A stretch of DNA of 64,000 nucleotides from positions 186,001-250,000 of the forward strand of contig NW_003314367.1 of the NCBI RefSeq assembly GCF_000143415.4, given 5' to 3'. Numbering within the stretch: position 1 is the stretch's first letter; each line of letters begins with the position of its first letter. A program made the position numbers and the translations under genes. This DNA is from Selaginella moellendorffii. Its lineage: Eukaryota > Plantae > Lycopodiophyta. The notes beneath the pieces are model-generated. The model was not told where the DNA came from, searched no databases, and was given only the letters and a program-made list of their open reading frames with translations. This document shows, piece by piece, positions 284 through 56,914 of the stretch.

Positions 284-3200
284 ATGGCACTGGAGCTCGA
301 CGGTGCCACCGGCAGCGATGAGAGCGCGATTCAGCAGCAGGATAGATCTTTCTCCAGGGAATCGCTGCCGCCGATGTTTGTGATCGTGTATTTCCACAAG
401 GCTATTCGTCTGGAGCTGGAGCGCATCCACGAGACGGCAATGTCGATGGATAGGAGCAGCGGGCAGGATTTTAGATCCCTGGCGGAGAGGTACAATTTCT
501 TGAGAGAAATCTACGAGCACCACAGCCAGGCGGAAGATGAGGTGATTGCTAAGGTGTGAGAATTGTCAATGTCGACTATACGTTTTTTTCTTTTCCAGGT
601 GATTCTTCCGGCTCTAGAATCTCGCGTCAAGAACGTCGCGCGCTCGTATTGCTTGGAGCATGTTGTGGAGAACGATCTACTCAACGAAATGTCCCAGCTT
701 CTCTCCACACATTTGGGGGATCAAACCGATTCGTCATGGCAGGAAATCATCTCTTGCACGGAAGCAGTGCAAAGAACAGTATGCCAGCACCTTTCGAAAG
801 AAGAAGGCCAGGTAAGTAACTTTGGACAAAGTGTTTCCATTGTTTCTATACGGTTTTTCTACTTCTTTTCCAGGTCATTCCGCTGCTCATGCAGTACTAT
901 AATCGCGAAGAACAAGCTAGCCTTGTCTGGCAGTTTATGGGCAATATTCCTGTGAAGCTCATGGAGATCTTTCTTCCGTGGCTTGCTTCCTCCTTGACTT
1001 TGGAAGAATGTAAACACATGGAACTTTGCTTTCGGGAAATCGTTCCAGCAGAAGAGCTTCTACAGGAGGTAAGATTTTGGTACGTAACACCCCAACTGCA
1101 CAGTTTTGAACGAATGCATGTAGGTAATTACTGAATGGTTTAAACGGGACCACAGTAAATTCAGGCTGGGGGCCAACAGAGCTCCAAAGACCACTCCAAA
1201 ACCTGCGAAGCAAGCTGGAACCGACGTCCGGTTTATCACGCGATCGCCACTCAACGATTTACTTCACTGGCATCAGGCTATAAAGCGCGAACTTCTTAAC
1301 ATAACTGAGGAGATCAAGGATTTGACGTCACTGGCAACCTTGAGCGAGCGAATGGAGTTTGTAAGTAAAGTATGGAGTTTTCACAGGTGTGTTTTTCCAT
1401 GCTTGGTGAATAACAGAGCTGAATGTGTGTTTACAGTGCAGCTGAGGATAAGTTCGTGTTTCCTCCAATTGGCAAGAAACTTGATCATGCTGTACAAGAC
1501 GAAGTGTGCAGTGAGGCTTTGAGAGTACTTGAAAATACTCTTAAAAACAACTGCAGCTCAACTGCTGTCATCACCCAGGCTGAGCTTTTACTTGATGCTG
1601 TTGAAGCACATTTCTCTATTGAAGAAACTGAGGTAACGATTCCTTCGGTTGTGTCGTTTCTCATTCATTCTTGAACAGTTCTTACCTCTTGCAAGTAAGC
1701 TTTTCAGCATTGACGAGCAGCGAACGTTGGTTTATGAAAGCCTCAAAACCATGCCTTTGGTTTTCTTGAGGCGAGTCCTTCCATGGATTGTTAACTGCGT
1801 TACTGCCAAGGAGGCGAAAGATATGCTTGTTAACATAAGACTGGCAGGTCTGTTTTATTTTCTAAAGCTTTTCTCGAGATTCAATGCGTTTTTTCTGCAG
1901 CACCTCAGGGTGACAGCATCCTGGTTGCTCTGCTGACGGGGTGGGCTTGCGAAAACCATTCGCATGTTTGGGATCTCTTAAAAAATGAGAGCCTAAAGGT
2001 TTCAGGAAAAAGGAGCTGTCAGTTGGCAGCCGACAGGCCTTCGAAGCTTTTCCGGAGTGAATTGAGTCTGTTGTCCAAGTCACTGCAGCTGGAGCCTGAT
2101 TTGAAAGGAAGCAAGCGGTCCACAGGGAAGCAGCAACTGAAACCAATCGACCAGATTTTCCAGTTTCACAAGGCAATAAGAAAAGACCTGGAGTATTTGG
2201 ACGTAGAATCAGCGCGACTCTTGGACTGCACCGACGAGTTCCTGGGACAGTTTAGAGGAAGGTTCTACTTCTTATGGGGCCTGTATCGTGCTCACAGCAG
2301 TGCCGAAGACACCATTGTCTTCCCGGCACTGGAGGCAAAGGAGGCTCTACTCAACGTCAGCCACTCTTACATGATAGATCACAGGCAGGAAGAGGATCTC
2401 TTCAACGAGATTTCAGCGATTTTGTCAACATTTTCGAGCCTTGTCACCCAATCTCAGGAGAAAACAGAAGGGGATGAAGCACACCAACACTTTCTTGCTG
2501 CAAAGCTGCAGCGCATGTGCAAGTCCATGCGCATTTGCCTCGGGAAGCACGTTGACAGGGAAGAGTCCGAGCTCTGGCCACTTTTCGACAAACACTTCTC
2601 AGTCCAAGAGCAAGACAAAGTGATGGCCAGGATAATAGGATCGACTGGTGCAGAAGTTATCCAAGCCATGCTACCGTGGGTGACAGCCGTTTTGACCGAA
2701 GAAGAGCGTAACTCGATGATGGAAACATGGGAACAGGCAACTCGAAACACTTTGTTTCAAGATTGGTTGAGTGCCTGGTGGACGGCGCCGTCGACGTCGC
2801 GCCAACGACCTACAAAAGAGACTTCTGTATCTACAAAAGACTGCCTACAGTCTTTGGTCGAGTACTTTTCTGAAGGAAAGGATACAGGTGGTGACACTCG
2901 TGATGACTCTGAAACGTTCAAGCCGGGTTGGCCTGAAATTTTCAGGCTCAACCAGGAAGAACTGGAGGCCGCAGTTCGAAAGCTATCTACTGATGCGTCA
3001 CTAGATCCTCGCCGCAAAGCTTACCTCATGCAGAACCTGATGACATGGTAAGCAAGTCATTAAATTACGCTTTCGACTGATCAAACCTTTTACACGAGCA
3101 GCCGTTGGATGGTTGCTCAGCAAAAGCTTCGCGATCAGCGATTGACGGATTCGGAACCGGCTCCAAGCTATGCTGACGAAGAAAACAAAGTTTTTGGCTG

Positions 3201-4188
3201 CAAGCACTACCGTAGGAACTGCAAACTTCGGGCTGCCTGTTGTGGTAGCTTGTTCACTTGCAGGCTTTGCCACGATGAAGCCAGTGACCATACAATGGAC
3301 AGGTACGCTTCTTGTCTTTATTTTCAATCGCCGAGGCATTTTTTTTCTGATCTTGCCAGGTACCAGACCTCAGAGATGCTGTGCATGCAGTGTCTAAAGG
3401 TTCAGCCTGTTGGGCCAAACTGCACCACACCGTCGTGCAATCGTTTCTGCATGGCGCGGTATTACTGCCCCATCTGCAAGTTTTTCGACGACGACTCGAA
3501 AAGGTTTGTCCAATGACAGATTCTACTTGACAGGCTAAAACTTTAGTTTGCAGGAGCATTTATCATTGTCCTTTCTGCAACATTTGCAGAGTGGGATCTG
3601 GTTTAGGCCAGGAGTTTTTCCATTGCTTGGTATGCAACGGATGCATGTCCAAGACTCTGGAGCAGAGCCACATCTGCAGGGAGAAAGGAACAGAAACGGA
3701 CTGTCCTATCTGCTGCGAGCAGATTTTTTCGTCGGTGCCCGACGTGAAGAGCCTTCCATGCGGGCATTATATGCATTCGTCATGCTTTTTGGTAAGTGCT
3801 CTTTTCCTCGTTTTTGTATCCTTTTACGCCGATGCTTCTTGTAGGCCTACAGCAGCAACCATTATACGTGCCCGATATGCTGCAAGACATTGGGCGACAT
3901 GGGAGTAAGTATTTAAAGTGAAGTTTAGAGCTACGACTGATCGATCAAGTTTCAGCTATATTTTGGCTTGTTGGATGCTCTCATGGAGGCAGAGCAACTT
4001 CCCGAGGAGTACCGTGGCCGCAAAGAGGTGCAGTGCAATCTTCCAATCATTTCTCACGAGAGCTCATCTTTGCTGTGGAATTGTAGACTATCTTTTGCAA
4101 CGATTGCGAGCGGAAGGGAGAGGCCCAATTTCATTGGCTTTACCACAAGTGTGGCGCATGCGGCTCGTTCAACACGAAGACTATATAA
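284..4188 (+). CDS. BTS: BRUTUS/HRZ-like iron-sensing E3 ubiquitin ligase (3 hemerythrin domains + CHY zinc finger + RING + zinc ribbon), multi-exon
   Basis: ATG 284. HHE motifs FHKAIRLELE..HHSQAEDEVI, WHQAIKRE..HSAAEDKFVFP and FHKAIRKDLE..HSSAEDTIVFP. CHY GCKHYRRNCKLRAACC; RING CPICCE..PCGHYMHSSCF; C-terminal FHWLYHKCGACGSFNT ending TAA 4186-4188. Short GT-AG introns. Confidence 0.95.
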
Positions 4189-8396: not shown

Positions 8397-9504
8397 CTCG
8401 ACTTCTTCCTCATCAAGAGTTACTCGATCCTTGGCAGCTCTCTTCGCTGCAAATGGTAAAATCTATCAACACTTTTCTTCCAGAGCTGCGCTACACTGAC
8501 TGACTTACAGGTGCTGGAGCTCCACAGGAAAGCACCCATGATCGTCGCAGCCGCATAAAAAACGAAGAAGGGATGAATCTACCTCTCCTCTTCTTCGATC
8601 CGGCGAGGATAGATTCAAGACCTGTGTGTGTCTGGACCACCTCGAAGCTGCAAACCGCAGGAACAACAGTGACCTCTGCATTGGATTCACAGAAGTGAGT
8701 TTTTCTTCTTTTCTTTTTCCTTTTTTTCTCTACAGCATTGATCGGCTTACCAGTGTGTGTGCGTTGCCAGGGGTGTTTCAGGAGGATTGATGGCCTCTTT
8801 TGTTCCTTCTCCAAGCCCTGCTCGTGAAACAAAAGTGGAGAAAGCGATGCATGCGTGCTAAGACGCGAGGAGCAAAAACTAAAACCGAGGATCCCAGCAG
8901 TGGTCAACCCTCGACTTAAATACGAGAAGCTCTCGGCTAGCTCCCGGACACTGTAGCAGACTCGGACAGCTTTTCCTTCCGAGACTCAGGTGCGGCGCCT
9001 CTGCACAAGCTTTGCAAACTGTTCTTTAATTTTTTACTCTTCTTTACTGGCTGGCCCAGCTTTTCAAACGGGGGAGCGAGAGGGAGCAAGCGAGAGCTCC
9101 GATCCGATCACCGCACCGCAAAGGCACCCGTGATTTTTTTCTTGGCGTTACGTAGAATCCCTTTTGGTCTGCCACCGCTTTTCCAAAGAGGTACCTTTAA
9201 TTCCTTTATTTGTTTGGCTCTGGGGGAGTATCATGGGAGCACGTTTGGCTTCTGTCTGGCTAGAAAGAATTAGAAGCTTTCATCCTTAAACCGACTCAAA
9301 GCTTGACTTTGATGTGGTTTTCCAGGTATAAAAAGATTATCCTCGCAACTCGGGATCAAAGTGTGCTCGTTTTCCCGTAGGAATGATGTCGTGTTTGACA
9401 ATGTAGGTGGTACGCATGGGAAGAACTTGTATGAGCAGTAGTAGCGAGGTGTGTAAGGAAAAGTTTCTTTCTTCGTTAACTAAAACCTCTGAGAAAAGAT
9501 TTAC

Positions 9505-10130
9505 AAAGCTCACATTTGCAGTATGCTGCCGACGGCCGTGAATCTTGTACCCGTCCATGAACTCGAGAGTCAGCCGGCAACAAGTGTTCCCCGAGTTTTC
9601 GAGAATGATGTACTCCAGTCCGGTGATCTCGCAGAACTCCACCGCTTGCAGGGACCATCGGCATCAAGCTGCTTGGTGTCTAAGTAGTCTTGATGTCCTT
9701 GCGATCACCAGTTTCAATTCAAACATAATTCAAGACTAGCTCGTTGGATCTCTTCCCTGTCGGAAGTACACCACCTCTGTCAAGAGTCATCAGGACACGT
9801 TGGTCGCGTCCCAAACCTGTGCAAACAATTGCTAGAAATATAACTTTTAACGCTTACCCTGGCAAGCTCGTCCGAACTCCCAGTGACGAAATATGATCCA
9901 TTCCCGTTGGGGGCGTCCCATTCCTGGAGAAGAATCCATGGTACCTCCGGGGCATGTAGGAGCTCGTTCCAGAGCTGGCCAGTGGCTCTCTCGCAAGGGC
10001 CGCTCCACAGGAAATGCATGATAAGGATATGGAGATCACCTCGATGATAAGCTCCAACATCAGACCATGTTTCAGCTTGAGTCTGCACGAGCCGTCAGCT
10101 AAGCTGCATGAAGATTGAACCCGAGTCTAC
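9505..10130 (-). pseudogene. Highly deleted WD40-bromodomain (PHIP/BRWD-like) remnant
   Basis: GDLHILIMHFLWSGPCERATGQLWNE joined to YFVTGSSDELARV and VEFCEITGLEY fragments; collinear with the copy at 33.7-38.6 kb. Confidence 0.8.
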
Positions 10131-10543
10131 TTGAAGACAGAAAACTTGAAAGCTTCGATTAAATCGTGTTCCGTTATCATACAAAGCAATTGAAGTGTAC
10201 CCAGAAATCCCGGTCTGCTGAATAAATAGTTACACTGATCCACCTACAAGAAAGTACTATTAGACACTGCCAAGCCACGTTCATGTCTATGTTCTTGCCC
10301 GGAAAAGACTTACTATCAGAAGCTCAAGACATGAGCCTTTTTTTTTCGAGGAGACGAAGACCCGAATCAGAAAAAATTTCCTGTCAAAAAACAGAACAGT
10401 TGGTCGTTTCTATGAATCAACTACTGATCACATGGTCCCACTTACCAACCACTGTGCGGTCTGCACACGACTGGATCAAGCCATTCAAACTCTGATAAAA
10501 TATTTTCAAAAAACGCACAAAATCAAAATTCACAAATGCTTAC

Positions 10544-11081
10544 CAGATAGAGCCTTGTAGAACAGTCGTTCATTGCTTGACTGTGGGCTGAAGCTGCCTC
10601 AGCTTGCAGGGCATCTCGCATCATCATCGCATCAGCCCTCACCACTCCATGCAAGGCACCAAAATCCTGTATCACTGCAGTAGTTGCACTTGCAGAAGCA
10701 AGACTGTGCAGTAGCTATTACTAGCATCAAGCAGGATTGCACATCATGCACACTACTCGCACATCATGCTTGACGCTGGCAATAGCTACTCCCAAATCAT
10801 GCTTGAGGCTGGAAAAATCCTGCTTCAGGTTGGTAGTAGCTGCTATGAAGTCCTGTTTGAGGATGGAGGTAGCTACTCCAAAGTTCTAGTTAAGCCTGAA
10901 AAGGTCCTCCTTGAGAGCTCTATGGAGAGCTTGCAGATCCTCCTTCACTACTCCCCTGATTGAAGAAGCCATGGTGATGACGCTCTTGGTGATGACGGTA
11001 ATGAGCGGCAATGCAAACTACCGTAGTGAAAGTACAAACACCCATGGTGATTGCCACAATCACACTCACGTTCACATCCAT
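10544..11081 (-). pseudogene. TM + 11/7-residue repeat protein (family E), longest repeat variant, disrupted
   Basis: MDVNVSVIVAITMGVC then frameshift; KEDLQALHRAL-KEDLFRL*..KQDFIAATTNL-KQDFSSL-KHDLGVAIASV-KHDV; same GTAAGC donor as other E copies. Confidence 0.65.
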
Positions 11082-11359
11082 TCTGATGGGCACAAAACCA
11101 GAATAATCAAAACCACCTGCTCACCTGAGCGGAGCTGGAGCGCTAGGGTTGCTGGAGCTGAAAATGAGACCTTGCCTGGCGCTCTGGAAGGCAATGCAGC
11201 TGCAAAGGACGAATAAACGAAATCAGCAAGGGGGAGAACATTGCATCAAAAGATGTAATTATCTCTGCTTGAAACCCTTTTAGGGCAACGCCGACTATTA
11301 GCAGCATTTCTCCCTGAAAAATCCTATCAAGCCCACTCAAAGAAACGCGATTTTTTTAT

Positions 11360-12680
11360 TTGCAGGTAGACGAGCAGCAGGTACGTGGGTGCAACGCAAC
11401 CAAAGAGTCGGAGCTCCACGAGATTGGGACAAGGAATCCAAACCCGCCCTCGGTCGCTCTGCGGCAAAAGAACGCACTAGCTTGGATCGCTTTGATCGAC
11501 GTGCCTTCTTCACGCTTGTGGTGGACAGGTTGCGCAGCGACCTTCCAGCGGCCGTGACGAAGTCCGCCAGTACCTCGTCACTGAAAAGGAAACAAAACTT
11601 GTGGAAGTAAGAAAAGGCAGCAAAGATTCACCTGAAGTCAAACGATGGTGTCCCAGTGCTCGAGATATTGAGCTCTTCCAGTGTCGGCCCCCTAGCCACC
11701 ATGAGCTCACTTAGCAATTTGTCGGTTCACGCTCGCGAGACCGCTGCAGCAATTGGTCGGAGAGTGCTCGGCCACAGAGCCCGAGCTCCAAAGCCTGAAA
11801 AAAAAAAAGTTATACATTGTAAACGGAGAGAGAGAGAGAGAGAGCAACCTGGACTCCATCGAGGGGAGAGTTTTCCATCAACTCCTGGGATGAAGATCCG
11901 CGTGAGAGGTCCTGCCAGGATTATCTGCACTGCCTTGGGACAAGCTCGTATAGCTTGGACGTAATGCACGGCTTTAAAGCCTCCCGCACCCCTTCCAAGG
12001 ACTCGACGTGATCGATCTTCTGGCAGAAAAGCTCGATTAGCAGCTTATACCACGCGAAGAAAGTGTGAGAATTCTTGCAAGCTTTGCTCGTCCTGACTAT
12101 GGAAGCTTACCAGTCATAGTCGTTCTTCTCCGGCTCCAAGCCTAGCAGATCGTTAGGGCTCTTCTGCTGCAGTCGCGGAGCACAGATTGACGGCGAGGCT
12201 GGTGGAGCCGCCACCTCCAAAGATCATCGAGTGGCGTGCGCTTCCTTGTTGTCGGCGCTGTAGTCATAGAACGCGCCCTGTGCCGAGCGCGGCCTCCGAT
12301 CCGGATTCCACCGCCTTACGTTTCCTACGCATCGCTCTCCTGCGCGGTCGCAAGAACCCTAAAATATCGGGAGACGTCGGGTGTTCGATCCTCGGTCACG
12401 AGGTTACGTACCATGGGCCACTTGTCCGCTTTCTGTTCGTACAGTGGTGTGACCGGATTGGCCGCGCGAATCCATGCTGCTGCGTGGATTCTCGGTGTAG
12501 AGCGGGGCGCTGTTTCTTCCTCCGCGGGCGCACCACGATCACGATCTCTTACCTGATAATGGGCTTCCGGATCGAGGAGTCCAGGCACGGCGCGCCTTCG
12601 AAAGGATGGCGCTCCATCTCCTCGACTTCTAGCGTTACTCGATCCTTGGCAGCTCTCTTCGCTGCAAAAATGGTAAAGCC
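11360..12680 (-). pseudogene. Degenerate duplicate of the RAD7-like gene and the 7.6-8.4 kb gene (mosaic fragments)
   Basis: Clear nucleotide similarity to 5720-8460 with many internal deletions. Confidence 0.85.
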
Positions 12681-12952
12681 TGACGCTCACGACGTGTTTG
12701 ATAGTGTTAAATAGCGTTCACTTGGAACATCATGATCCGTGCATATACAGGCAAACTCCCGCATTTCCCGTACATCTGAACGAGCAGATTGCAGAGGACT
12801 GTGTTGTTTGTTTGCCAGGACGCATGGATCTCTCTGTGAAGTTGTTTCCCTCTGGCTAAGTCTCTGGTAAGAGCGCAGGATTTCAGCAGCGAGACGTACA
12901 GAGCTGGGCTGATGGTGGTGCTAGAAACGCACATCTCTGTCAACTGAATCAT
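12680..12952 (-). pseudogene. PPR gene 5' fragment (copy 1)
   Basis: MIQLTEMCVSS..MYGKCGSLP identical to the start of the 26616 copy, truncated and rearranged. Confidence 0.85.
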
Positions 12953-12984
12953 CGATCTTATACAGCGCTAGCCTACAGCTTCTA

Positions 12985-13651
12985 TCTAAACTGGTTTTGC
13001 GACTTCCATATCAACAATCCGGCTTGTTTCGTCGGTGCTCGTCTTCTTCTTCGGTTTCTTCATCTCATGTAGACGGACAAGTAGGCAATGCTGAGCAGCA
13101 AAGTGACGAGTGTAAAAGCAGCACCGACAACACTCACGCCTTGCAGAACAGTGCTGCAACCAGATTCTTCAAACCTTTCCACTTGATAACTGCTGAGGCT
13201 GGCCGCCGTGTTCAAGAAGAGCTCAGCGATCACGAAAGAGATCCTGCCAAGTTGATCTTTTAAATAAATGATTTTTTATTTTTTATTTTTTTGCTGAAAA
13301 TACCAGGAAAGAGTGAGGAGGATAATTGCAGCGATCTTGCATCCGCGTCGATGAAGCGACGAAGAACAGCAAGTGCATTTTGTGGCGGCTGTGGCGGTGA
13401 TTTGGCCGAGAAGCAAACACACGGCAGCTCCGATAGCTAATCCGCTTGCTACCCCTCCTCTCTTGGGAGTGCATCTGATTCTGGTGTGATCAGATGAAAT
13501 CTCGTCTTGAATGGTTTCCTACAGCCAATTCAAGGGCGAAGTGAAGGCGGCTTACGTGATAACTTGTGGAGGAAGAACCGACTGAAAGGCCGAACGCGAG
13601 GAGATCCAACGCTAATGTAAATGCAGCAGCGGGATAAAGACATAACCTCAT
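12985..13651 (-). pseudogene. DUF1218-family membrane protein, copy 1 (4-nt deletion near the C-terminus)
   Basis: Near-identical to 26650-27338; lacks gccg at ~13044 relative to copy 2. Confidence 0.65.
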
Positions 13652-14149: not shown

Positions 14150-16537
14150 GCGAATTTGTCTCTCGTAAACTTTGAACTCTTCAACTATTTTCGCTGCTAT
14201 CTGGTAACAAACAATAGTATACCATGGGAACTGGAAAGCTTCTGGCTCGTCAAGGAGTGTAGCATGTGTTCAGGATGTCCTTGTTCTTTGCAACCTTGGA
14301 GTAGGGGGAACCGAAAATACACATGTCAACGATGCTTTCCTGAAAAAACGAACATTAAAAAGTACCAATTTCGAAAGTACCTTTCCAGGAGTCCTGGCAC
14401 ATCAGCGATTTGTGTTGGCCGCTACTTAACTCAACACAGAGTTTGTTTTACCTCTTAGAGCCTCTGCTCTCGAGTCCTAGTCCCGCCACATCAGCGTGTC
14501 CTGCCATATCAGCGAGTCCCACCACGTTAGCGAGTCCTGCCACATCAACGATTTTAGCTGGTCGCCACTTAACTCAGAATAACCTTTCTAAAAATACGGT
14601 ATCCCCAGGCCGGCAAATCCACCACGTAGCCAGCTCTGTCTAGTATCCCGAAAGCAGGGTTCACCAAGTTCTTCAGTAAAGCATCCGAGAACTCCGTATA
14701 CTGATCAACCAGCAACGCATCTAGTAGGCAAATCGATGATGAGAAGATCAACAGCTCCCTGGACACATTTCGGTAGAGACTTTGCACAAAAAAGTGAACA
14801 GTTCAACTTGACCTGTGACTGACAATCCAATCCTTCAGTCCTGGCGGAAAAGGTCTCCCAGCTTTGAAGTACTACTGGACTGCAAGGTTTCCTGAATCTG
14901 CATGACTGATTTCCAAACTCCCGTTTCCGTTCTATGGCATCGGCATCCTCAACATATCACCTTCTTCCGATCTGGTGACGGGGCTGAAGAAAAAGCCTGG
15001 CCCTTGCTGCCCTTGGTGGCCGATCTTGCTGACTTGATATCCATCTTCACCTGGAGCTTCCTCACAGCACTCTCGTTCTTCCACAATAGCTCTCACCGAT
15101 AATCCTTGTGTATCTTGTAGCTGGCCATCTCCCATTCCGGACAGCCACTGGGAAGGAAACCCAGCCAGAAAGGACAGTACTACACTTCAAAATCGCTAAT
15201 GTCACACATGAGCCTGCTCCACATGTTGCGACATCCATCTACTCTTCGAAATTTTCAGGGAGTGCATCATTTTTCCATTTGAAAAACCATAAATAGATAA
15301 ATATAAATAAAGAAACCAATTAAAGACTTGCCTGAATGTCATTCTTTTCGAACTCAAATAACTGAGAATGTAAAATTGTTGCACTTAACTCCTTGTTCTC
15401 ACGCATGCTCTGGTACATATCTAGCTCGTGCATCTTCATATACCAGGCCATAAACTCGTATACTGCTTGCCTGTTCGACCTGCAAATGCCATTCCCATTA
15501 GCTTTTTTCACAACTTGCTAAGGAGGTCTAAGACCTCCCAACCAAGAGTTCCTTTGCATTTGGTACTTCTTCACCCACCGAGGTCGCTCCTATGAAGATA
15601 GATAACAATTAAGTAATATATCAACGAAGCAAAAGAGGACTTCATCCACCTCTATGCTAAGTCCCATTACTCTTTCAATGGCAACAAATTTCATTTTGTC
15701 ATATTTAAACTTTTATTACACAAGTTCCAATAAACCAGATAGAAACCAGATACCAGGCAGAATAGACTCAGCTTAATTCGCATTGCAAGGTTTCCTTTGT
15801 TCCTTTGGCACTAAGTGGTTAGTAGTGTCAGCGCTCTCCACTCTCAATAGGGTACTAAAACAACTGGTACTCCACCCGCCACGTTCGCCCATTATGTCAA
15901 CCGACATTGCCAAAAGACATACCATCTTGTTTCACTCGACCCTCTCCAAGTGAAATTACACTCTTTGATGAAAACCACCTAATAGAGTTTCATTTGCCTT
16001 CAGTGACTTGCATATTCACTAGCGTTCGGTTAGTTATTTCCCCCACAAGCCACTAATCCTAGATAATCAAAAAACTTCGACAACCAGAAATCCACATCTC
16101 TCACAGGGACAAGTTCTATCCAAACATGAGGTGGTTTCACTCCACCAAGCCTTTCGGTTATGCCTGCATTTCAACACTTCCACAATCTAATAACTTCAGT
16201 TCCATATCTGAGCATTGTGGAGCTCATACACTAAAGGTTATCTGGTTCACCCAGAGCCTTTACAAGCCTACCAATAACCAAGAATTTCCAAAACCACATT
16301 ACAGGTTTTCAAGCTCTTCAAACTCTCTCTATCGGTAAACTAGTTCTCCAGAGTTTCAGTTAGGTTCTCTAGTTAGCCAGGAAGAAAAACTCTTCCTACA
16401 GATTAGCATTCGTTTAGCTTACAACAACTTGCAGCCAGCAAGGAATCTGGATCTTCCAACATGTTTTGAGTTGGTTCATCTGTTTGAAAATAAACTAAAG
16501 AAAAGTAAAACAGTCAACTAGTCTCTCTGATACCAAA
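14150..16537 (-). repeat. Unclassified ~2.4-kb repeat (copy 1) with tRNA-Met PBS-like end and degenerate ORFs
   Basis: Three copies (here, 27904-30265, inverted 39517-41878). Minus strand reads ..GTGACA-TT-TGGTATCAGAG at 16525-16543. Confidence 0.75.
14480..14552. repeat. 18-bp tandem repeat x4 (gtcc(c/t)gccacatcagcga-like)
   Basis: Visible units; also at ~28235-28325 and ~41505-41595. Minus strand encodes DVAGLA-like hexapeptides. Confidence 0.8.
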
Positions 16538-16690
16538 TGTCACGTGGACCCATTTTTGGTACCACGTGTTGCGGCTGCCCTCTCAAGCAGCCTCGACCCA
16601 CGTTCTGACTTGAACTTTCGAGCTCAGATTATTAACCGCGCGGATGTAACGGGCGACTTTAGGTTTAACACATTTTAGGGTTTGGCGGCT

Positions 16691-17773
16691 ATGGGGAGCT
16701 GAAGAAATCACACAACGACGACGAGGGTTTCTTTGATAGGCACAAAGAGATGACTGATCTGCTCACACAGATTGAGGGAGGCCTCAACCGCATCGCTGTA
16801 GTGATAGGCCCCAACAATTCAGGCAAGTCCGCTCTGCTCAAGCAGCTCAGGAAGATGTGGGATGCCAGCCCTCTTCTGAGCTGGAGCCCTCTTCTGCAGG
16901 AGGAGCCCTCTTCTCATGCTCCTCCTGGGAGCAGGAGAGCTCCCAGGAGCTCTCTTGAGAGCTCCTGGGAGAAAGAGCTCCTGGGAGCTCTCTCTCCCCC
17001 AAGAGAGAGAGAGAGAGAGAGTGAGAGAGAGCGAAAGAGAGTGAGCTAAAGGGTAGTTGCCACTAATCTCACATGCTCTTTGTTCTAACTACGAATCAGG
17101 AGTTGTGACATTTGTTGTTATGTGTTTGGCGACGAGGTTTGACAGGAATGCATTGGTGTTCTTTTCACCAAAATGCGAACGCCATGAAAAAAACGTTCAA
17201 CAGTGGAAGTCAATTGATGTGGGGCGCTTTGGTGAAAATAATGCCAAAGCATTCCTGTCAAGCTTCGTCACCAAACGCATAATAGTAAATGCCACAGCTC
17301 CCGACTCGTGGTCAGAGCAGAGGGTGTATGAAATTTGTGGCAGCTGCCCTTTGACATTTGAGAACTGTGTGATTGATGTGTTCAGGCAAGAAAGCAACAT
17401 GGAGGTGGTTCTTGAAGACATGGTGGTGGCAAAGCTGCCCATGATTCTCCTAGGACTGGAGCATGGTCATGGCTGGGAAGAGGCTAACTTCAGGGAGGTG
17501 ATGAAGCTCATTGTGGCGCATGGTGTAGTTGGGCTGTCGAAGATTTGCCACCGTATCTTCAAGTCAGACATCTCAGAGTGCTGGCGGCAGATCGAAGCAA
17601 TGCTCTCCTTCAATGTGATACATGTTCATGCGAGGGGACTGGTTTGTGATGATCTTTGAGACTTTGACAGGGGGCCTGCCATGAACTATGATTTCGTCAT
17701 GGCAAGGTCGCCTACCCACCATGTGGCTATGAAAATGTTTTGTGATGGTGTGTTTGACAAACCGGACAAATAG
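16691..17773 (+). pseudogene. STAND/ATPase_2-type ATPase copy 1, disrupted by a frameshift, low-complexity filler and an inverted duplication
   Basis: Walker A GPNNSGKS retained. Walker B region replaced by filler 16876-17047 and an inverted arm 17048-17176. Premature TGA at 17657-17659. Confidence 0.9.
17048..17352. repeat. Fold-back inverted repeat (arms ~128 bp, loop ~48 nt) derived from ATPase coding sequence
   Basis: 17048-17176 is the imperfect reverse complement of 17225-17352 (aaagggtagttgccac.. vs ..gtggcagctgcccttt). Confidence 0.9.
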
Positions 17774-18228
17774 AAACTGATCATTATCCTTAATATTGAT
17801 TAATATAGAAATGTGAATATCATATTAGTCCCTCATCAAAGCAACAAAGACAAACTTTTGCAAGCGATTTCAACTTTTGCATTTCCGTCACACAGCCTTG
17901 AGTTCCTTCTTGAAAGTCCGCAAGTTTGAGGAGTGAAATCAAAACAGCCAACTCCATTCGGAAATAAACTGTTACAGAGAATCCTTGAAAAGCGCAGAAA
18001 TATCACATGTTCCTTTACCATACAAAGCAATTGAACCCATTGGCAGCTCCAAAGGGTCTCATCCACCTACAAGAAAGTACCAATTAGACACTGCCAGGCC
18101 ACGTTCATGTCTATGTTCTTGCCCGGAAAAAGACTTACTATCAGAAGCTAACGACATTTATTTCCGAAGATCCGAATCAGAAAAAAAATTCCTGAGAAAA
18201 AAAAAGAACAGTTCATCGTTTCTATGAA

Positions 18229-18697
18229 TCACTGAACCAGCAGCAGCGCCACTTTGCGCTTTGGACACGACCTGATCAAGCCATCCAAACCCTGATCCAG
18301 TATTTTAAAAGCCGCACAAAATCTAGATCTGACAAATGCTTACCTGATAAAGGGATGTGGAACAGTCGACCATGACTTGGTTGTGGGCTGCTATAACATC
18401 CTCCTTCACTGCATCGTGAAGTGCCTGAAGGTCCTTCTTGATTGCAGCACACATAGCCGCAACATTCACTGCCCCAGCCAGGGAACCAAAGTCCTCCTTC
18501 AAGGCACCATGGATCTCATGCACATCCTCCCTCACTGCCACACGAATGCCAGAGGCCATCACCTGGAGATTCTCAGTCACGACTCCCATGCTTGCACGCA
18601 TGGCAGATGCCAACACCAGCACACAAGCTGTGGTCACGATGCATAGCACACTGATCGCAATGGTGTTAACAAGCACCATGGCAATCAAAAACTCCAT
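18229..18697 (-). CDS. Small TM + 11-residue-repeat coiled-coil protein (family E, subtype 1), 2 exons, open
   Basis: MEFLIAMVLVNTIAISVLCIVTTACVLVLA..REDVHEIHGAL-KEDFGSL..KKDLQALHDAV-KEDV; 52-nt GT-AG intron 18292-18343; exon 2 GLDGLIRSCPKRKVALLLVQ*. Confidence 0.6.
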
Positions 18698-19110
18698 CGC
18701 CAGGCTTTGCAGCAATGAAATCAAGCTTTGATCAGGGTTTGCAGCAGCTATGCAAAACGCAAATGACGCTTACCAGAATTTCGAGCCACCCGCCCTATCT
18801 TCACAAGAACCCTAAGCTAGCGGTCCCTTTTGAAATAAAGGCGATGTTACGTAACTGGCGTGGGCCGCCCTTCGTACACTGCTCTGGCGGGAACTCGAGT
18901 TCCTTGTCAGTGGTACGCGGCCTCGATGACAAGAGGAGGAGGAAGAGGAGAAGAATGGCGCCCCATCTCCTCGGCTTCCTTCTTCCTCATGGTTTTCCAG
19001 GTATGAGAGTGATCCTCGGAATAATCTCGTGTTTGACAATGTAGATGGATGTGTAAGGAAAATGTTTCTATTCTTCGTTAACTAAGACCTCGAGAATTTT
19101 TTTACAAAGC

Positions 19111-22937: not shown

Positions 22938-23069
22938 GGAAGCTGCGGAGACGACGAACCCTAGATTTTACATGGAGGGAAAACTTGCTCACACTAACCC
23001 TGGCTATGGCGGACAATTTTCTTAAAAATTGTTTAAAGAATCGCGTTTTTTTGTTTATTTGAGTTTTTT

Positions 23070-24600
23070 AAAGACGAGCAGCAAAGAGTCTGAGCTCCAC
23101 GAGATTGGGACAAGGAATCCAAACCCGTCCTCGGTCGCTCTGCGGCAAAAGGGCCTGACAAAGAACGAACGCTTTCACGCTTGCGATGGACAGGTTGCGC
23201 AGCGAGCTTCCAGCGGCCGTGACGAAGTCCGCCAGTACCTCGTCACTGAGAAGAAAACAAAGCTTGTGTAAGTAACAGATGAGAAGAAAGGCAGTAAAGA
23301 TTCACCTGAGGTCCTAGTGCTGTAAGGTGACGTCTGTAAGCTCCAAGCCTTCGAAGTGCAAAGCTTTTCAGAGTCGAACCGCAAGCTGCAACAGCCGCCA
23401 CCGTAACGCTGCACAAAAAACATCCCGCGGATCTCAGTAAGAAGCCAAAGCAGCACAGACGGTTGGTTACCTGCAATGCGACTGAGCTCCTCTAGTTTCG
23501 GCCCCATGGCCACCATGAGCTCGCTCGGTAATTCGTCGGTTCACGCTCGCGAGAGAAAGGGACGTCAGCTCGGGCAGCCCTGCTCCGAAATTTGCTGCAA
23601 TCCGGGAGCAAGATCTCCGAGAGAGGTCCTGCCAGGATTTTCTGCGCTGCTTGGTACAATCTCGTATAGCTTGGACGTAATACAGTGATCCTTGGCAGCT
23701 CTCTTCGCTGCAAATGGTAAAATCTATCAACACTTTCCTTCAAGAGCTGCGCTACACTGACTGACTTACTGTTGGAGCTCCACAGGAAAGCAGCCACATA
23801 AAACACGAAGGAGGAACAGCTGTGATATCTTGGATTCACAGTGAGTTTCTTTCTTCTCTATTCCTTTATTTGGCCTCTCCAAGCCCTGCAAAGTGGAGAA
23901 AGCGTTGCGTCCGTGGAGCAAAAACTAAAACCCAGCAGTGGTCAACCCTCGACTTGAAAACGAGAACCTCTGGCTCAGCTTCGAGAGCAAGAGCTCCGAT
24001 CCGATCACTGCACCCGTGATTTTTTACGTAGAATCGCCACTTTTCCAAAGAGGTACCTTTAATTCCTTTATTTGTTTGGCTCCGAGGGAGTATCATGGGA
24101 GCTCTAGAAAGAATGGTATAAAAAGATCCTCCCAACTCGGGACAAAAGGTGTGCTCGTGAATGATCTCGTAGTCACTATATAGTCTGCAAGTCAATGCTG
24201 AAGCTGCTGCCGCGAATCCTGTACACGTCCATAAACTCGAGAGTGAGCCGGCCCGACACTTCGAGAATGTACTCCAGTTCGGTGATCTCGCAGAACGCTC
24301 GGAGTTCTCACCCTTCCATCGTCGTCAAGCTAGTGTTGATGTCCCTGCGATCAGTTTCAATTCAAACATAATTCAAGGCAAGCTCGTTGGATCTCTTACC
24401 CCAGCAGCAGCGCCACTTACCCACTTTGCACACAAGCCATCCAGACCCTGATCAAGTAATTTAAAATCCGCACAAAATCAAAATTTAACAAATGCTTACA
24501 TGATAGAGGGATGTCCATAACTTGGTTGTGGGTATGTCCTCTGTCAGTGTGCCATGAAGTGCCTGGAGGTCCTGCTTGATTGCAGCATGAATTGTGGAAG
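23070..24600 (-). pseudogene. Mosaic of RAD7-like, 8.4-9.2 kb region, BRWD and family-E fragments
   Basis: Nucleotide similarity to 5740-6950, 8420-9260, 19860-20110 and 18240-18450. Confidence 0.8.
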
Positions 24601-25007: not shown

Positions 25008-26616
25008 TCAAGATTCGTATGTGCTTGAGAGCAGCACGTAACAGGACGAGTTCGTTTCATCCAACTTCTGTACTTGTTGAGCAAGCTCATCTGCATTCAG
25101 CTTCGTTTGGTTATTCCCATGAGTCTTGTATGCGCTAAGAAGCTGAGTCCAAGCAACGGGACTAGGATGGAAGGGCATGTTGTGAATCAAATCCTGAGCT
25201 TCAGCCAGCCTTCCTGCTCTTCCCAGATGATCGGCGATGCAGATGTAATGCTCAGCCATGGGATCAACACCATAGTCGTTTCTCAAGCTCACAAAATACG
25301 TCCACCCGTCTTTCAGCTCCCAGTGACAACAAGACGAAAGCACCGCGATGGAGGTGATTCCATCCGGTTCAACTCCATCCAAACCCATCTCCTTGAAGAG
25401 ATCCAGAGCTAGCAGGCCATGACCACTCTCTGGATATGCAGATATCATCGCACTCCAAGACACCGTGCGTCTTTCAGGCATCGCATCGAAGATCCGACGA
25501 GCCTCCTCCAGACTGCCGCACTTCCCATACATTGTCAGGATCGACGTCGAAACCGGCTCCAACGCGCTGAATCCGGCGGGGACGGCTTCGGCGTGGATCA
25601 GCTTCCCGACTCTGAGCAACGAGACCGTTGCACAGGCGTCGAAGATCGTAACGAAGGTGATCTCGTTGGGTTGCAAGCCTTCAAGATCCATCTTTCGAAA
25701 CAACGCGATGGCCTGCTGATTATGCCCGTTGTGCGAATACGCCGGAATCGTAACGTGCCAGGAAACCACATCTCTGCAAGGCATCTGATTCAAGACATCC
25801 ACAGCTTGATCAACCAGTCCGTTCTGAGCATAGGCTGTGACCATTGAGTTCCAGGTCACGACATCCCTCTCAGGCATCTTTTCAAACAACACCCTTGCCT
25901 CACGTAAATGACCGTTTTGCGCATACGCTCTAACGATCGTCGTCCACGATACGACATTCTTCTCCGGCATCGCATCAAACACCATCCTCGCAAGTCCCAA
26001 ATCGCCCTCCGAAGCGTACGCAGCTACGATCGTGTTCCTGGCGATGAGATTCTGCTGAGGCATTCCGTCAAACAAAACCTTTGCTCGAGCGGTGTCGCCA
26101 TTTTGAGCATACGCGGAGATCATCAGCGACCACGAAACCAGATCTCTCCTCGGCATCTCTTCGAACAATGTCTCGGCCTCGCGAAAACGCTTCGTGTGAG
26201 CGTAACCAGATATCATCACATTCCAACAGATCCTCAGCCTCTTCACTGTAGGCTTCCAGCATTGTCGTCCAGGAAACCACATTCTTGATCGGCATCTTGC
26301 CGAAAAAAATCCTCGCTTGCAGCAACTGACCATTCTCTGTATATGTACGGATCGTGATGTTCCAAGTGAACGCATTAGGCTGTTTAACACTATCGAACAC
26401 GTCGCGAGCATCAGGCAAACTCCCGCATTTCCCGTACATCTGAACGAGCAGATTGCAGAGGACTGTGTTGTTTGTTTGCCAGGACGCATGGATCTCTCTG
26501 TGAAGTTGTTTCCCTCTGGCTAAGTCTCTGGTAAGAGCGCAGGATTTCAGCAGCGAGACGTACAGAGCTGGGCTGATGGTGGTGCTAGAAACGCACATCT
26601 CTGTCAACTGAATCAT
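25008..26616 (-). pseudogene. PLS-class PPR gene with E-domain region, frameshifted
   Basis: MYGKCGSL..A..FD and repeated RDVVSW/KNVVSW motifs, HYICIADHLGRAGRL..MPF.P..AW..LLSA, SSCYVLLSS. Frameshift and deletion near 26230-26250. Confidence 0.88.
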
Positions 26617-26649
26617 CGATCTTATACAGCGCTAGCCTACAGCTTCTAT

Positions 26650-27338
26650 CTAAACTGGTTTTGCGACTTCCATATCAACAATCCGGCTTGTTTCGTCAGT
26701 GCTCGTCTTCTTCTTCGGTTTCTTCATGCCGCTCATGTAGACGGACAAGTAGGCAATGCTGAGCAGCAAAGTGACGAGTGTAAAAGCAGCACCCACAACA
26801 CTCACGCCTTGCAGAACAGTGCTGCAACCAGATTCTTCAAACCTTTCCACTTGATAACTGCTGAGGCTGACCGCCGTGTTCAAGAAGATCTCAGCGATCA
26901 CGAAAGAGATCCTGCCATTACCACAAAAGTTGATCTTTTAAATAAATGATTTGTTGTTTTTTTTCTTTTGCTGAAAATACCAGGAAAGAGTGAGGAGGAT
27001 AATTGCAGCGATCTTGCGTCCGTGTCGATGAAGCGACGAAGAACAGCAAGTGCATTTTGTGGCGGCTGTGGCGGTGATTTGGCCAAGAAGCAAACACACG
27101 GCAGCTCCGATAGCTGATCCGCTTGCTACCCCTCCTCTCTTGGGAGTGCATCTGATTCTGGTGTGATCAGATGAAATCTCGTCTTGAATGGTTTCCTACA
27201 GTCAGAAAACGTGAATTCAAGGGCGACGTGAAGGCGGCTTACATGATAACTTGTGGACGAAGAACCGACTGAAAGGCCGAACGCGAGGAGATCCAACGCT
27301 AATGTAAATGCAGCAGCGGGATAAAGAGATAACCTCAT
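26650..27338 (-). CDS. DUF1218-family multi-pass membrane protein (3 exons), apparently intact copy
   Basis: Exon 1 MRLSLYPAAAFTLALDLLAFGLSVG; exon 2 ..CIPKRGGVASGSAIGAAVCLLLGQITATAATKCTCCS..IILLTLSW; exon 3 ISFVIAEIFL..CSTVLQGVSVVGAAFTLVTLLLSIAY; GT-AG junctions. Confidence 0.72.
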
Positions 27339-27783
27339 TGAAACTCTTGCAACTGGGAATGAATCAATTGAAGCAGAAGCAGAGTAAAGGGAGACATTGT
27401 CGGTGAAGTTAAGCAACGTGAGTTAGTATTTAACATATAATTAACAAAATGTTCGCAAAACACATTACGTAAAACCTATTCTATGAAAATAGTCAACTCT
27501 ATGTTTTGTTACATTCCACTGAGGAATGTTGTCACGAAGAGTGGCGGTCAAGCTATGTTTCTATCTTCCTCCTGCCGAGTGTATGGGGAATTCTAATCGG
27601 TACATAATATTCTTTTCCATACAAAGAATATTCTGGTGCGGGTTCTAACACAAAATGGAAGAGGAGGTAAATAACGCTATGTACGCTATGTATTTATTTA
27701 TCTTTAATAATAAGTTAAATATGTATAATAATAAATAAAGTTGTGTTTATTTATGGAATATGTCAAATTTATAAAAATATTCA

Positions 27784-30265
<2,482 letters not shown>

Positions 30266-30385
30266 TGTCACGTGGACTCATTTCTGGTACCACGTGTTGC
30301 GACCCACGTCGGAGCTTCTATTTTACCAACTTTCGAGCTCAGATTATTAGACTTTAGGTTTATCACATTTTAGGGGTTGGCGGCT

Positions 30386-31618
30386 ATGGCGGCTGAAGCG
30401 GTGAGGGAGCTGAAGAAATCGCTCAACGACGACGAGGGTTTCTTTGATAGGCACGAAGAGATGACTGATCTGCTCACACAGATTGAGGGAGGCCTCAACC
30501 GCATCGCTGTAGTGATAGGCCCCAACGATTCAGGCAAGTCCGCTCTACTCAAGCAGCTCAGGAAGATGTGGGATGCCAGCCCTCTACTGAAAGCCCAGTT
30601 GCCGCTCTTCTACGTCGACATTGCAGACTTCAGTTCCCCGGAGCAGGCTGCTGCAGAGATTGCAAGACAGATGCGAACTTGGGCTTCTTGGCTCAAAGAT
30701 GTGACGATCGGAGGTATCAGTGTCGATCTGAAGAAGCTGACATTCAAGGGCGTAAACCATGATGCATCGAGCTTTCTAGAGCTGTTAAAAGCGGAGCCAG
30801 TGACGGACTTGGGCTCTGTCATGAGTTGGTTTATGAGCCTGGCAGCTGAAAACCAGCATAGGAGGCCAATTTTTGTCATCGATGAAGTTGACAGGTTGAA
30901 GCAGTGGTCTGACCAGGATGTAGGCACCCTCCTGGGATGTTTCATAGCCATGACCAAGCAGGACCGGACTGCTATGGTGATTATGTCCACCTCCGACGAC
31001 CTTTTTCGGCAGTGGTTCCAGAGTCATACAAACGTTCAACAGTGGAAGCCAGTTGCTGTGGGGCACTTTGGTGAAAAGAATGCAAAGGCATTCCTGTCAA
31101 GCCTCGTTGCCAAGTATATAGCAGCAGGTGCTACAGCTCCCGACTCGTGGTCGGAGCAGATGGTGTATGAAATCTGTGGCGGCTGTCCTTTAACACTTGA
31201 GAACTGTGTGATCGATGTGTTCGAGGAGGGAAGCAGCATGGAGGTGGTTCTCAAAGACATGGTGGTGGCAGAGCTGCCCAAGATTCTCCTGGGACTGGAG
31301 CATGGTCATGGCTGGGAAGAGGCTAACTTCAGGGAGGTGATGAAGCTCATTGTGGCGCATGGTGTAGTTGGGCTGTCAAAGATTTGCCGTTGTATCTTCA
31401 AGTCGGACATCTCGGAGTGCCAGCGGCAGATCAAAGCGATGCTCTCCTTCAATGTGATACATGTTCGTTACATGCCGAGGGGACTGGTTTATGATGATCT
31501 TCGAGACTTTGACAGGGGGCCTGCCATGAACTGTGATTTCGTCATGGCAAGGTCGCCTACCCACCATGTGGCTATGAAAATGTTTTGTGATGGTGTGTTT
31601 GACAAACCAGACGAATAG
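30386..31618 (+). CDS. Intronless STAND-class P-loop ATPase (ATPase_2/'archaeal ATPase'-like), 410 aa, only intact copy
   Basis: FFDRHEE N-motif, Walker A IGPNDSGKS, Walker B PIFVIDEVD, sensor strand MVIMSTSD, STAND GxP motif ICGGCP, winged-helix-like C-terminus; uninterrupted ORF. Confidence 0.85.
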   Translation: MAAEAVRELKKSLNDDEGFFDRHEEMTDLLTQIEGGLNRIAVVIGPNDSGKSALLKQLRKMWDASPLLKAQLPLFYVDIADFSSPEQAAAEIARQMRTWASWLKDVTIGGISVDLKKLTFKGVNHDASSFLELLKAEPVTDLGSVMSWFMSLAAENQHRRPIFVIDEVDRLKQWSDQDVGTLLGCFIAMTKQDRTAMVIMSTSDDLFRQWFQSHTNVQQWKPVAVGHFGEKNAKAFLSSLVAKYIAAGATAPDSWSEQMVYEICGGCPLTLENCVIDVFEEGSSMEVVLKDMVVAELPKILLGLEHGHGWEEANFREVMKLIVAHGVVGLSKICRCIFKSDISECQRQIKAMLSFNVIHVRYMPRGLVYDDLRDFDRGPAMNCDFVMARSPTHHVAMKMFCDGVFDKPDE

Positions 31619-31644
31619 AAACTGACCATTATCCTTAATATTAA

Positions 31645-32481: not shown

Positions 32482-32864
32482 CAAGGAAAAAAACAAGCTC
32501 CTCGATCACGCATCAGAGGTAACATTATCAGAGGTAACAGCAGCGACAGGAACAGCCAGCCACCAAGCCAACTCCATTCGGAAATAAACTGTTACAGAGA
32601 ATCCTCGAAAAGCGCACAAATATCACATGTTCCTCTACCATACAAAGCAATTGAACCCAGTGACTATCGGCAGCTCCAAAGGGTCTCATCCACCTACAAG
32701 AAAGTACCAATTAGACACTGCCAGGCCACGCTCATGTCTATGTTCTTGCCCGGAAAAAGACTTACTATCAGAAGCTCACGACATATAAGCCTTTTTATTT
32801 CCGAAGATCCGAATCAGAAAAAAAATTCCTGAGAAAAAAGAGAACAGTTCGTCGTTTCTATGAA

Positions 32865-56881: not shown

Positions 56882-56914
56882 ATAGAAGCTGTAGGCTAGC
56901 GCTGTATAAGATCG

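Follow-up and report, generated by a model that had tools for sequence, protein, structure and literature searches.

How does a dead gene copy acquire a long inverted duplicate of part of its own coding sequence, and what does the resulting fold-back do to the copy and to its intact relative? The question is raised by a 64,000-nucleotide (nt) stretch of the Selaginella moellendorffii genome (contig NW_003314367.1, positions 186,001 to 250,000), here called the window, in which an ATPase gene is present as three copies: an intact open reading frame (ORF) at 30386–31618 and two pseudogenes, referred to as copy 1 and copy 3. Copy 1 runs from an ATG at 16691 to a TAG at 17773, as determined from a three-way alignment and ORF lists; like the other parts of the ATPase copies positioned below, it is given on the plus strand. 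The interpretation we consider probable, from the sequence features set out here, is that a scar of fold-back repair made this dead copy hairpin-forming and that silencing-linked cytosine decay is centred on the hairpin, with small RNAs against the intact gene a plausible consequence.

An inverted-repeat search of positions 16500–18000 shows two arms in copy 1, 17048–17172 and 17228–17352. Each is 125 nt long, the two are ungapped, 78% complementary and separated by 55 nt, and they reach approximately 129 nt if weak similarity is counted. This agrees with the original prediction, made from the letters of the DNA, which had placed a fold-back of about 128 bp at 17048–17352 and matched it to approximately 31062–31192 of the intact gene. 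When the left arm plus margins is used as a blastn query, the right arm is found in inverted orientation (E-value = 6.6e-28), along with copy 3 (E-value = 1.5e-25) and the intact gene at 31063–31192 (E-value = 9e-22); register alignment together with blastn defines 31067–31191 as the intact-gene segment homologous to the arms. The arms differ at 27 sites, 24 of them transitions and three transversions, and the richness in transitions noticed at first is therefore real.

Fold-backs of the whole window were counted by a tiled self-comparison. Two large ones of complex sequence are present, 17048–17352 (E-value = 3e-52, palindromic alignment) and 60871–61168 (E-value = 3e-44), and both lie in dead ATPase copies; no other local inverted repeat of complex sequence in the 64 kb is as long as that of copy 1. 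Smaller complex fold-backs are found at 10696–10804, 48312–48386/48598–48672 and 63709–63747, and the remainder consist of AT/TA microsatellites or of palindromic filler at 16922–17005. The self-comparison shows no comparable hairpin in the PPR, F-box or WD40/BRWD region, as had been said of the other amplified genes.

Homology of copy 1 to the intact gene extends from upstream of the ATG to position 16879 (intact 30590) and begins again at approximately 17185–17191 (intact 31024–31030). The 5′ remnant, 16691–16879, carries the Walker A motif (GPNNSGKS) and is 97% identical to intact 30405–30590, which is the baseline divergence, although 16 nt are lost directly after the ATG. The upstream, promoter-proximal region is 97–99% identical to that of the intact gene. 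Alignment blocks show that a segment of approximately 440 bp, intact 30591–31023/31029, is missing; it includes Walker B (D166/E167, at nt ~30881–30886 of the intact gene), so that copy 1 retains Walker A and has lost Walker B, as originally described. At the deletion there is a filler of approximately 170 bp, 16880–17047, with no counterpart in the intact gene. It consists, in order, of two additional copies of the break-proximal 11-mer with which the left homology closes (three copies in a row in all), nested self-complementary GAGCTCC..GGAGCTC units, and a (GA)n-like run. Besides its own palindromic pieces and a (GA)n run, no other copies of the filler are found in the window. The left arm follows at 17048–17176 (ungapped core 17048–17172) and repeats copy 1's own 17224/17228–17352 in inverted orientation, antisense to the gene. 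The loop, 17177–17227, consists of approximately 8 nt of junction followed by native sequence (intact ~31020/31024 to 31066) containing a native AACGTT palindrome. The right arm, 17228–17352, is resident gene sequence corresponding to intact 31067–31191 and is the peak of copy-1-specific transitions, and the 3′ remainder occupies 17353–17773.

This arrangement is probably the product of snap-back repair at a resected break, as judged from the order and make-up of the segments. A double-strand break in copy 1 would have been resected; the 3′ end of the right-hand side would then have annealed to its own strand approximately 40 nt inward and been extended (snap-back or fold-back synthesis), and repeated short rounds of templated synthesis would have preceded the joining of the new end to the left side. 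Snap-back synthesis predicts the order that is observed, i.e. inverted arm, loop of native 31024–31066, direct arm. A deletion combined with an inverted insertion templated from adjacent sequence is present, with approximately 440 bp missing and an arm template that starts approximately 40 nt past the right breakpoint. Iterative templating and microhomology are also seen, in the threefold 11-mer and in the nested palindromic units of 15–32 nt, and the inner junction displays a 5-nt inverted match to the native AACGTT region. These features resemble synthesis-dependent microhomology-mediated end joining (SD-MMEJ) or polymerase-theta-type end joining, as outlined in PMC5728401, PMC2943611, PMC11724301 and PMC4912351, in the deletion plus adjacent-templated inverted insertion, in the recopying of a break-proximal motif and in the short palindromic units of the filler. 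The repair mechanism thus appears similar to that of documented fold-back events; the enzyme is not deducible from sequence.

Two other sources of inverted arms, a chimeric join in the assembly or the terminal repeats of a foldback element or miniature inverted-repeat transposable element (MITE), are scarcely credible for copy 1. Assemblies do contain fold-back chimeras, and the artefactual ones are near-perfect. The copy 1 arms, however, differ at 22% of sites and each carries derived changes of its own, so that they are not two reads of one molecule, and the assembly artefact that the original prediction had allowed for is implausible for this reason. Terminal inverted repeats of transposons can yield similar hairpins (10.1101/2024.07.25.605110), but both arms here are homologous to ATPase coding sequence, their matches in the window are the three gene copies only, the filler is unique there, and no Rfam family is found at threshold. 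A foldback transposon or MITE was rejected on these grounds.

The fold-back coincides with a local change in the pattern of substitution. Copy 1 and the intact gene lie in two tandem units, each of approximately 10–13 kb and offset by 13.7–16.4 kb, which show ~97–100% identity in cleanly aligned stretches and differ by approximately 1.8% (69 differences in 3900 cleanly aligned columns). Copy 1 was compared with the intact gene in these clean flank columns and in the right arm plus 3′ part. Transitions number 49 and transversions 20 across the 3900 flank columns, against 45 and 6 across the 500 columns of the right arm and 3′ part; the odds ratio of transitions in the hairpin region versus the flanks is 7.8 (p = 4e-19), and for transversions p = 0.11. 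The enrichment of transitions is approximately 8-fold at the hairpin arm and fades over about 500 bp to the flank level, with 19, 13, 7, 8, 7 and 3 differences per 100 nt from the arm outward. Changes specific to copy 1 follow the same course, 13/125 in the arm and then 9/128, 6/140 and 5/160 along the 3′ remainder away from the hairpin, with 4/187 in the 5′ remnant. The transition excess is therefore confined to approximately 600 bp at the hairpin, the 5′ remnant and about 4 kb of flanks being at baseline. When the two arms of copy 1 are compared with each other, there are 24 transitions in 125 positions versus 49 in 3900 in the flanks (p = 2e-19). Copy 3 has the same local peak, with 15 right-arm-derived and 17 left-arm-derived changes in 138 nt versus 2–4% further 3′. 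The arms of the two ATPase hairpins together give a transition to transversion ratio of 45:4, versus 454:157 in ten other S. moellendorffii inverted repeats (p = 0.005).

Changes of the C>T/G>A type make up 26 of the 36 copy-1-specific changes. The proportion of cytosines changed in the hairpin versus the flanks is 14/34 versus 18/383 at CG (41% vs 4.7%), 13/53 versus 6/417 at CHG (25% vs 1.4%) and 18/179 versus 25/1164 at CHH (10% vs 2.1%), H being A, C or T. An excess of C>T/G>A that is highest at CG and CHG is the pattern of methylation-linked cytosine decay, and it points to silencing-linked deamination centred on the hairpin; the simplest cause would be cytosine modification and deamination focused on the inverted repeat. 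In the sequence of events that we propose, the fold-back would make the locus a target of homology-dependent silencing, a hairpin transcript giving rise to small RNAs and these to cytosine methylation or heterochromatin, after which deamination of the modified cytosines would erode the locus. The strong C>T/G>A excess on repeated DNA is shared with the methylation-driven decay of plant repeats (e.g. PMC4090718). The difference from that decay, and from fungal repeat-induced point mutation (RIP), which is used here as an analogy only, is that the excess is centred on the fold-back and not on the whole 13.7-kb tandem duplication. RIP-like mutation of whole duplicates was rejected as an explanation because the 13.7-kb tandem units differ by just ~1.8% and the flanks are at baseline.

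The predicted RNA of copy 1 folds with −180.4 kcal/mol in the sense orientation (z = −18.7) and −151.6 in the antisense; for copy 3 the values are −206.7 and −171.6 kcal/mol. In the computed sense stem of copy 1, 115 of 125 arm positions (~92%) are paired, with G:U counted. The sense RNA folds better than the antisense because the arm differences mostly leave G:U on the sense strand: G:U-compatible versus A:C-type differences are 17:7 in copy 1, 16:5 in copy 3 and 33:12 pooled (binomial p = 0.0025). The ten other S. moellendorffii inverted repeats are balanced, since counting the larger class in every case still gives just 250:204 (p = 0.018 versus the ATPase hairpins), and the non-hairpin 3′ part of copy 1 shows no such strand bias (9:10). 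As evidence the G:U bias is suggestive only. In copy 1 it can be explained by a left arm that mutates more (15 vs 4) plus a preference for G>A on the sense strand; in copy 3 there is an excess of plus-strand C>T in both arms.

Both hairpins retain close matches to the intact gene. The 21-mers of the copy 1 left arm at 17126–17151 pair with intact 31088–31113 with 0 mismatches and 2 G:U pairs, and the copy 3 arm contains perfect 21-mers to the intact gene. Changes specific to the intact gene are themselves denser in the hairpin-homologous segment 31067–31191, 7/125 versus 11/656 elsewhere (p = 0.016), and four of these are C>T/G>A. This cluster might be a footprint of targeting in trans, or might partly represent parallel change in both dead copies.

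With arms homologous to a protein-coding gene, a stable computed stem-loop and retained complementarity to the founder, copy 1 is best described as a putative ageing hairpin-RNA or proto-microRNA (proto-miRNA)-type locus of the inverted-duplication kind. It belongs to this known class and is not a new kind. The inverted-duplication model is said to go back to Allen et al. 2004. In the summary of the model for young plant MIRNA and hairpin small interfering RNA (siRNA) loci given in 10.1101/2024.07.25.605110, with an update in PMC3237417, the points of likeness are an inverted duplicate of part of a coding gene giving a long fold-back with arms homologous to the founder, the promoter-proximal part of the founder carried along, and partly decayed arms with one island near-perfectly complementary to the founder. 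Copy 1 differs in its predicted stem of approximately 125 bp, which is of the hairpin-siRNA type and not a trimmed miRNA precursor. The hairpin is also situated inside a dead, in-place copy with the repair junction visible, there are two hairpins against adjacent segments, and the host belongs to the lycophytes and has no prominent 24-nt siRNAs (PMC5569507). An Rfam scan of 16000–18500 gives sub-threshold matches only, the best being MIR394 with 31 bits versus a gathering score of 60, and those on the palindromic filler are animal mir families. A known curated miRNA family was therefore rejected, no Rfam covariance model coming near its gathering score. The most informative features of copy 1 are the repair signature at the junction, the hairpin-centred transition gradient and the sense-strand G:U bias, none of which figured in the original prediction.

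Copy 3 is situated at 60538–61731 (ORF lists, three-way alignment) in an older, partly inverted duplicate. Its fold-back, 60857–61168, consists of a left arm at ~60857/60871–60996, a loop at 60997–61044 and a right arm at 61045–61168. The left arm is an inverted copy of intact 30927–31071, the segment adjacent to that of copy 1. The left breakpoint of copy 3 corresponds to intact ~30703, with ~6 nt of filler and a 48-nt non-native loop, whereas that of copy 1 is at intact 30590 with ~170 nt of filler. Left breakpoints, fillers, arms and loops are thus all unlike, in keeping with the differing breakpoints originally described. The further claim that the two hairpins arose by separate events is favoured by these comparisons, although the ends of the arms meet more closely than it would lead one to expect. 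Separate events are the simpler history because the intact gene sits in a unit nearly identical to that of copy 1. The reverse-complemented left arm of copy 1 has an identity of 98/125 to its own right arm, 94/125 to copy 3 and 90/125 to the intact gene. At eight sites, mostly not at CG, both copy 1 arms share a derived state against a state common to the intact gene and copy 3; where the arms differ from each other, the left one carries the derived state at 15 sites and the right one at 4, with a further 7 ambiguous.

A single origin would require one ancestral fold-back over intact 30927–31191, of which copy 1 lost the centre and copy 3 the outer half of the inverted arm. Palindromes are known to lose their centres by deletion, and the outer end of the copy 3 inverted arm (intact ~31071) and the inner end of that of copy 1 (~31061) do lie within approximately 10 nt of each other, for which the chance is approximately 2% under uniform placement in a 1.2-kb gene (a rough estimate of our own). 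The gene bodies of the three copies are almost star-like and not clearly ((copy 1, intact), copy 3), and the copy 1 left arm is just slightly nearer its own right arm than copy 3. We nevertheless hold a single origin to be very unlikely. It needs approximately four events instead of two, and an ancestral hairpin would need the intact gene to have been rebuilt, as its unit matches that of copy 1 at ~97–100%. The dissimilar left breakpoints and fillers and the eight shared-derived sites speak against it as well, and a 10-nt overlap is inconsistent with reciprocal exchange. The coincidence at intact 31061–31071 could be a hot spot, shared history or chance. The corresponding junction sites are 17173–17180 in copy 1 and 60853–60870 in copy 3. 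Intrinsic DNA structure was rejected as the cause of the shared boundary, as the single-strand DNA at intact 31061–71 folds no better than shuffles.

The intact ORF is intronless and encodes 410 amino acids (aa) with Walker A at G45–K51 and Walker B at D166. It matches Pfam PF01637 (ATPase_2) with 61.6 bits against a gathering cut-off of 33.2, and G45, P46, G50, K51 and D166 are nearly invariant among its relatives. An exhaustive HMMER search of 1.84 billion representatives gives 131 matches, the best with 32% identity; the named relatives are hypothetical proteins of S. moellendorffii, ferns, green algae and the yellow-green alga Tribonema. Neither the whole ATPase nor its C-terminal half (aa 215–410) found relatives in word-based protein searches, which thus yielded no further annotated close copies, and exact-protein look-ups of the intact ATPase and of the full PPR ORF matched no record. 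A sequence search of solved structures gave matches at the P-loop level only and the NCBIfam scan no meaningful match, so that the protein was placed by a fold search. The AlphaFold model has a predicted local distance difference test score (pLDDT) of 88.6, and with it the archaeal AAA+ ATPases PAB2304 (PDB 2qen) and SSO1545 (PDB 2fna) are at the top (E-values ~1e-11 to 1e-10), followed by Orc1/Cdc6 and, further down, by nucleotide-binding modules of nucleotide-binding leucine-rich repeat (NLR) proteins. The two archaeal proteins, which are Orc1/Cdc6-related members of PF01637, share Walker A, Walker B and the fold with the intact ORF, but identity is just 15–16%. On the strength of the profile match and the model, the intact ORF is taken to encode a PF01637 AAA+ ATPase with a predicted AAA+ plus helical/winged-helix fold. 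Nonsynonymous to synonymous changes are 5:7 in the intact ORF versus 37:18 in the dead copies (p = 0.11), and constraint on the ORF is thus weakly indicated by the substitutions. Nothing examined gives an indication of toxicity or dosage sensitivity. GenBank annotation of GL377671.1 (GCA_000143415.2) has no gene model at the intact ORF, at the adjacent F-box ORF or at copy 1, and the window at ~26063–34931 carries no called gene in that annotation; a 351-aa PPR model on GL377671.1 is 100% identical to the PPR ORF of the window.

Proteins encoded elsewhere in the window include PPR, F-box, RING and hemerythrin proteins, a copia-type element with gag, integrase and reverse transcriptase ORFs at 50318–53294, and a PIF1-helicase region. 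The F-box ORF (31645–32496) adjoins the intact ATPase. The copy 1 unit lacks approximately 775 bp bearing this F-box gene (17814–17946 versus 31659–32566), with ~35 nt of its 3′ end left. Inverted segmental duplications at the kb scale, with 91–97% identity, pair 27929–30349 with 39421–41878, 25617–27524 with 56026–57913, and 23010–23676 with 59819–60489; each tandem unit ends on the right against an inverted copy of sequence from upstream of an ATPase copy. The smaller fold-back 48312–48386/48598–48672 is a 75-nt inverted repeat of 83% identity with a 211-nt spacer, approximately 1.6 kb upstream of the copia-type ORFs. Positions 18430–19066, which contain e.g. 15 transitions and 2 transversions in 100 nt, overlap a 33-nt-repeat family also found at ~10900, 22760 and 39165. 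The low-GC block at 42000–46800 (0.32–0.35) contains a PIF1-like helicase ORF at 42401–43621 and several ORFs without family matches and is probably a Helitron-type element.

The original prediction had called for a survey of this ATPase family for fold-back derivatives, with the provision that equally common fold-backs elsewhere would tell against it. The sample here consists of seven S. moellendorffii loci of 21 kb, each an annotated PF01637 paralogue with flanks of 10 kb. One of these, L003 (GL377640.1), has part of its own ATPase repeated in inverted orientation 0.8 kb upstream (8912–9162 versus 10386–10733, ~80% identity). The fragment corresponds to aa ~156–264 of the intact protein and overlaps the region used by both hairpins of the window. 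The L003 ATPase is a distant paralogue, 30% identical to that of the window. The L003 gene aligns to the window ATPase in two reading frames and may be damaged. In L004 that same central part of the gene has been partially duplicated upstream in direct orientation (8832–8969), L009 has internal direct partial duplications within the gene model (10001–13260), and the remaining four loci show no partial duplications. Three of seven loci thus carry partial duplications, and the central gene region is the site of the two partial duplications mapped in L003 and L004, one inverted and one direct. In L002 (GL377565.1) a protein alignment to the window ATPase, 402 columns long and unbroken, reads in frame straight through the annotated intron of the paralogue 'COD1' (EFJ37611.1) at 10550–10813, and for this reason the intron is probably a mis-annotation that removes coding sequence.

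Local inverted repeats with 65–88% arm identity and arms of 60–940 nt are present in most of the seven loci: L002 3499–7977, L007 3053–5940, L008 19775–21004, L009 16001–18203 and L003 1091–3340, the last (1091–1257 versus 3170–3340) placed between gene models unrelated to each other. Since fold-backs are not uncommon in this genome, any argument from their mere presence is weakened, and the expectation that they would be peculiar to the ATPase is in part contradicted. The L009 pair, with 144 transitions and 24 transversions, may be a sign that inverted repeats more widely undergo transition-biased decay. As the rearrangements recur in the central part of PF01637 genes, a fragile region and selection both remain tenable. 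The fragile site proposed at the outset draws some support from the arm ends within ~10 nt and from the partial duplications at three of seven paralogue loci, but no unusual DNA structure is predicted at the boundary.

Several observations weigh against a snap-back product that was later eroded by silencing. The insert is large: fold-back insertions at yeast breaks are mostly 5–34 bp in the outline given in PMC11724301, and the SD-MMEJ and polymerase-theta-type events documented in the sources cited are mostly of tens of bases, whereas the arm is 125–129 nt and the filler ~170 nt. Transversions between the arms are marginally raised, 3/125 versus 20/3900 (p = 0.03), so that part of the divergence may be due to greater age, with flanks homogenised by conversion. 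The eight shared-derived sites imply that copy 1 was changing fast before the inverted duplication or that sequence was exchanged between the arms. An obvious 24-nt siRNA peak is lacking in S. moellendorffii, whose adult aerial tissue reportedly has no CHH methylation (PMC5569507). Of the C>T/G>A changes that arose in the left arm, however, 8 out of 12 affect CHH sites, a further departure from the decay of plant repeats. Canonical RNA-directed DNA methylation may thus not be the agent, and other deamination routes, e.g. single-stranded exposure or transcription, are possible. A patch at 18430–19066 (versus 33050–33760) is transition-rich with several indels and has no local fold-back, and the unrelated inverted repeat of L009 has the high transition ratio already given.

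On a neutral account, the fold-back is an inert scar of error-prone repair, the transitions reflect ordinary methylation of repeats or pseudogenes, and no hairpin RNA is made. The repair signature at the junction agrees with it, and copy 1 has other lesions, in a unit from which the adjoining F-box gene is missing too; the sampled loci are rich in fold-backs and partial duplications, transitions dominate even in the flanks (49:20), and the patch at 18430–19066 shows that transition-rich sequence occurs without a fold-back. We regard this account as doubtful, if still one to be taken seriously, because the transition excess is centred on the hairpin arm and not on the whole pseudogene or unit, with the 5′ remnant and 4 kb of flanks at baseline, because copy 3 has the same local peak, and because both the transition ratio and the strand bias exceed those of the other inverted repeats. 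Alternatively, the hairpins of copies 1 and 3 may have been kept because their small RNAs hold down the intact ATPase, which would then be dosage-sensitive or harmful. By analogy, such a selected trans-silencer would be comparable to young MIRNA genes, or to NLR-targeting miRNAs that arose from the genes they target. The presence within 64 kb of two hairpins against neighbouring parts of a single gene, both predicted to fold better as sense RNA by 29–35 kcal/mol, would be expected of it, and the same is true of a G:U-compatible bias that is absent from the ten other inverted repeats and from the non-hairpin 3′ part of copy 1. The 21-mers with 0 mismatches in both hairpins, the clustered changes in the homologous segment of the intact gene, the promoter-proximal region of copy 1 at 97–99% identity, and a third inverted fragment of the same central region beside a 30%-identical paralogue in L003 also fit. 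The G:U bias of copy 1 can however be produced by the left-arm mutation excess together with a G>A bias of the sense strand that is intrinsic to the sequence. Arm identity is down to 78%, the best 21-mers are confined to one small island, fold-backs are common in this genome, and constraint on the intact ORF is weakly indicated (p = 0.11). The intact gene, an uncharacterised PF01637 protein without a gene model, gives no sign of toxicity, and the recurrent selection to suppress a toxic or dosage-sensitive ATPase that had first been proposed is without direct support. Both the silencer itself and its likeness to such miRNA genes appear unlikely on the features listed. The wider form of the idea, that the hairpins of copies 1 and 3, and perhaps the L003 fragment, are selected RNA-silencing genes born repeatedly from dead Orc1/Cdc6-like PF01637 copies, appears more unlikely again.

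Were the hairpins selected silencing genes, the sense-strand G:U bias would record purifying selection on an RNA stem, the change cluster of the intact gene would be the trace of a target modified, and mutated, in trans under small-RNA guidance, and the stepwise birth of a miRNA-like regulator would be visible in a plant without a prominent 24-nt siRNA pathway. If the hairpin is inert, the locus is a clean example of large fold-back repair scars and of the common local inverted repeats of this genome, and a caution against inferring selection from such structures. If, as we think probable, a fold-back repair scar became the centre of silencing-linked cytosine decay, one locus would capture three steps that are usually seen apart: a repair accident creating a gene-derived hairpin, with the junction still legible; the silencing-linked erosion of a perfect stem to a mismatched one in which pairing is kept through G:U; and a possible footprint on the intact target gene. 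The small-RNA and methylation pathways of lycophytes differ from those of seed plants, and the locus is a concrete place to study how hairpins are handled outside the angiosperms.

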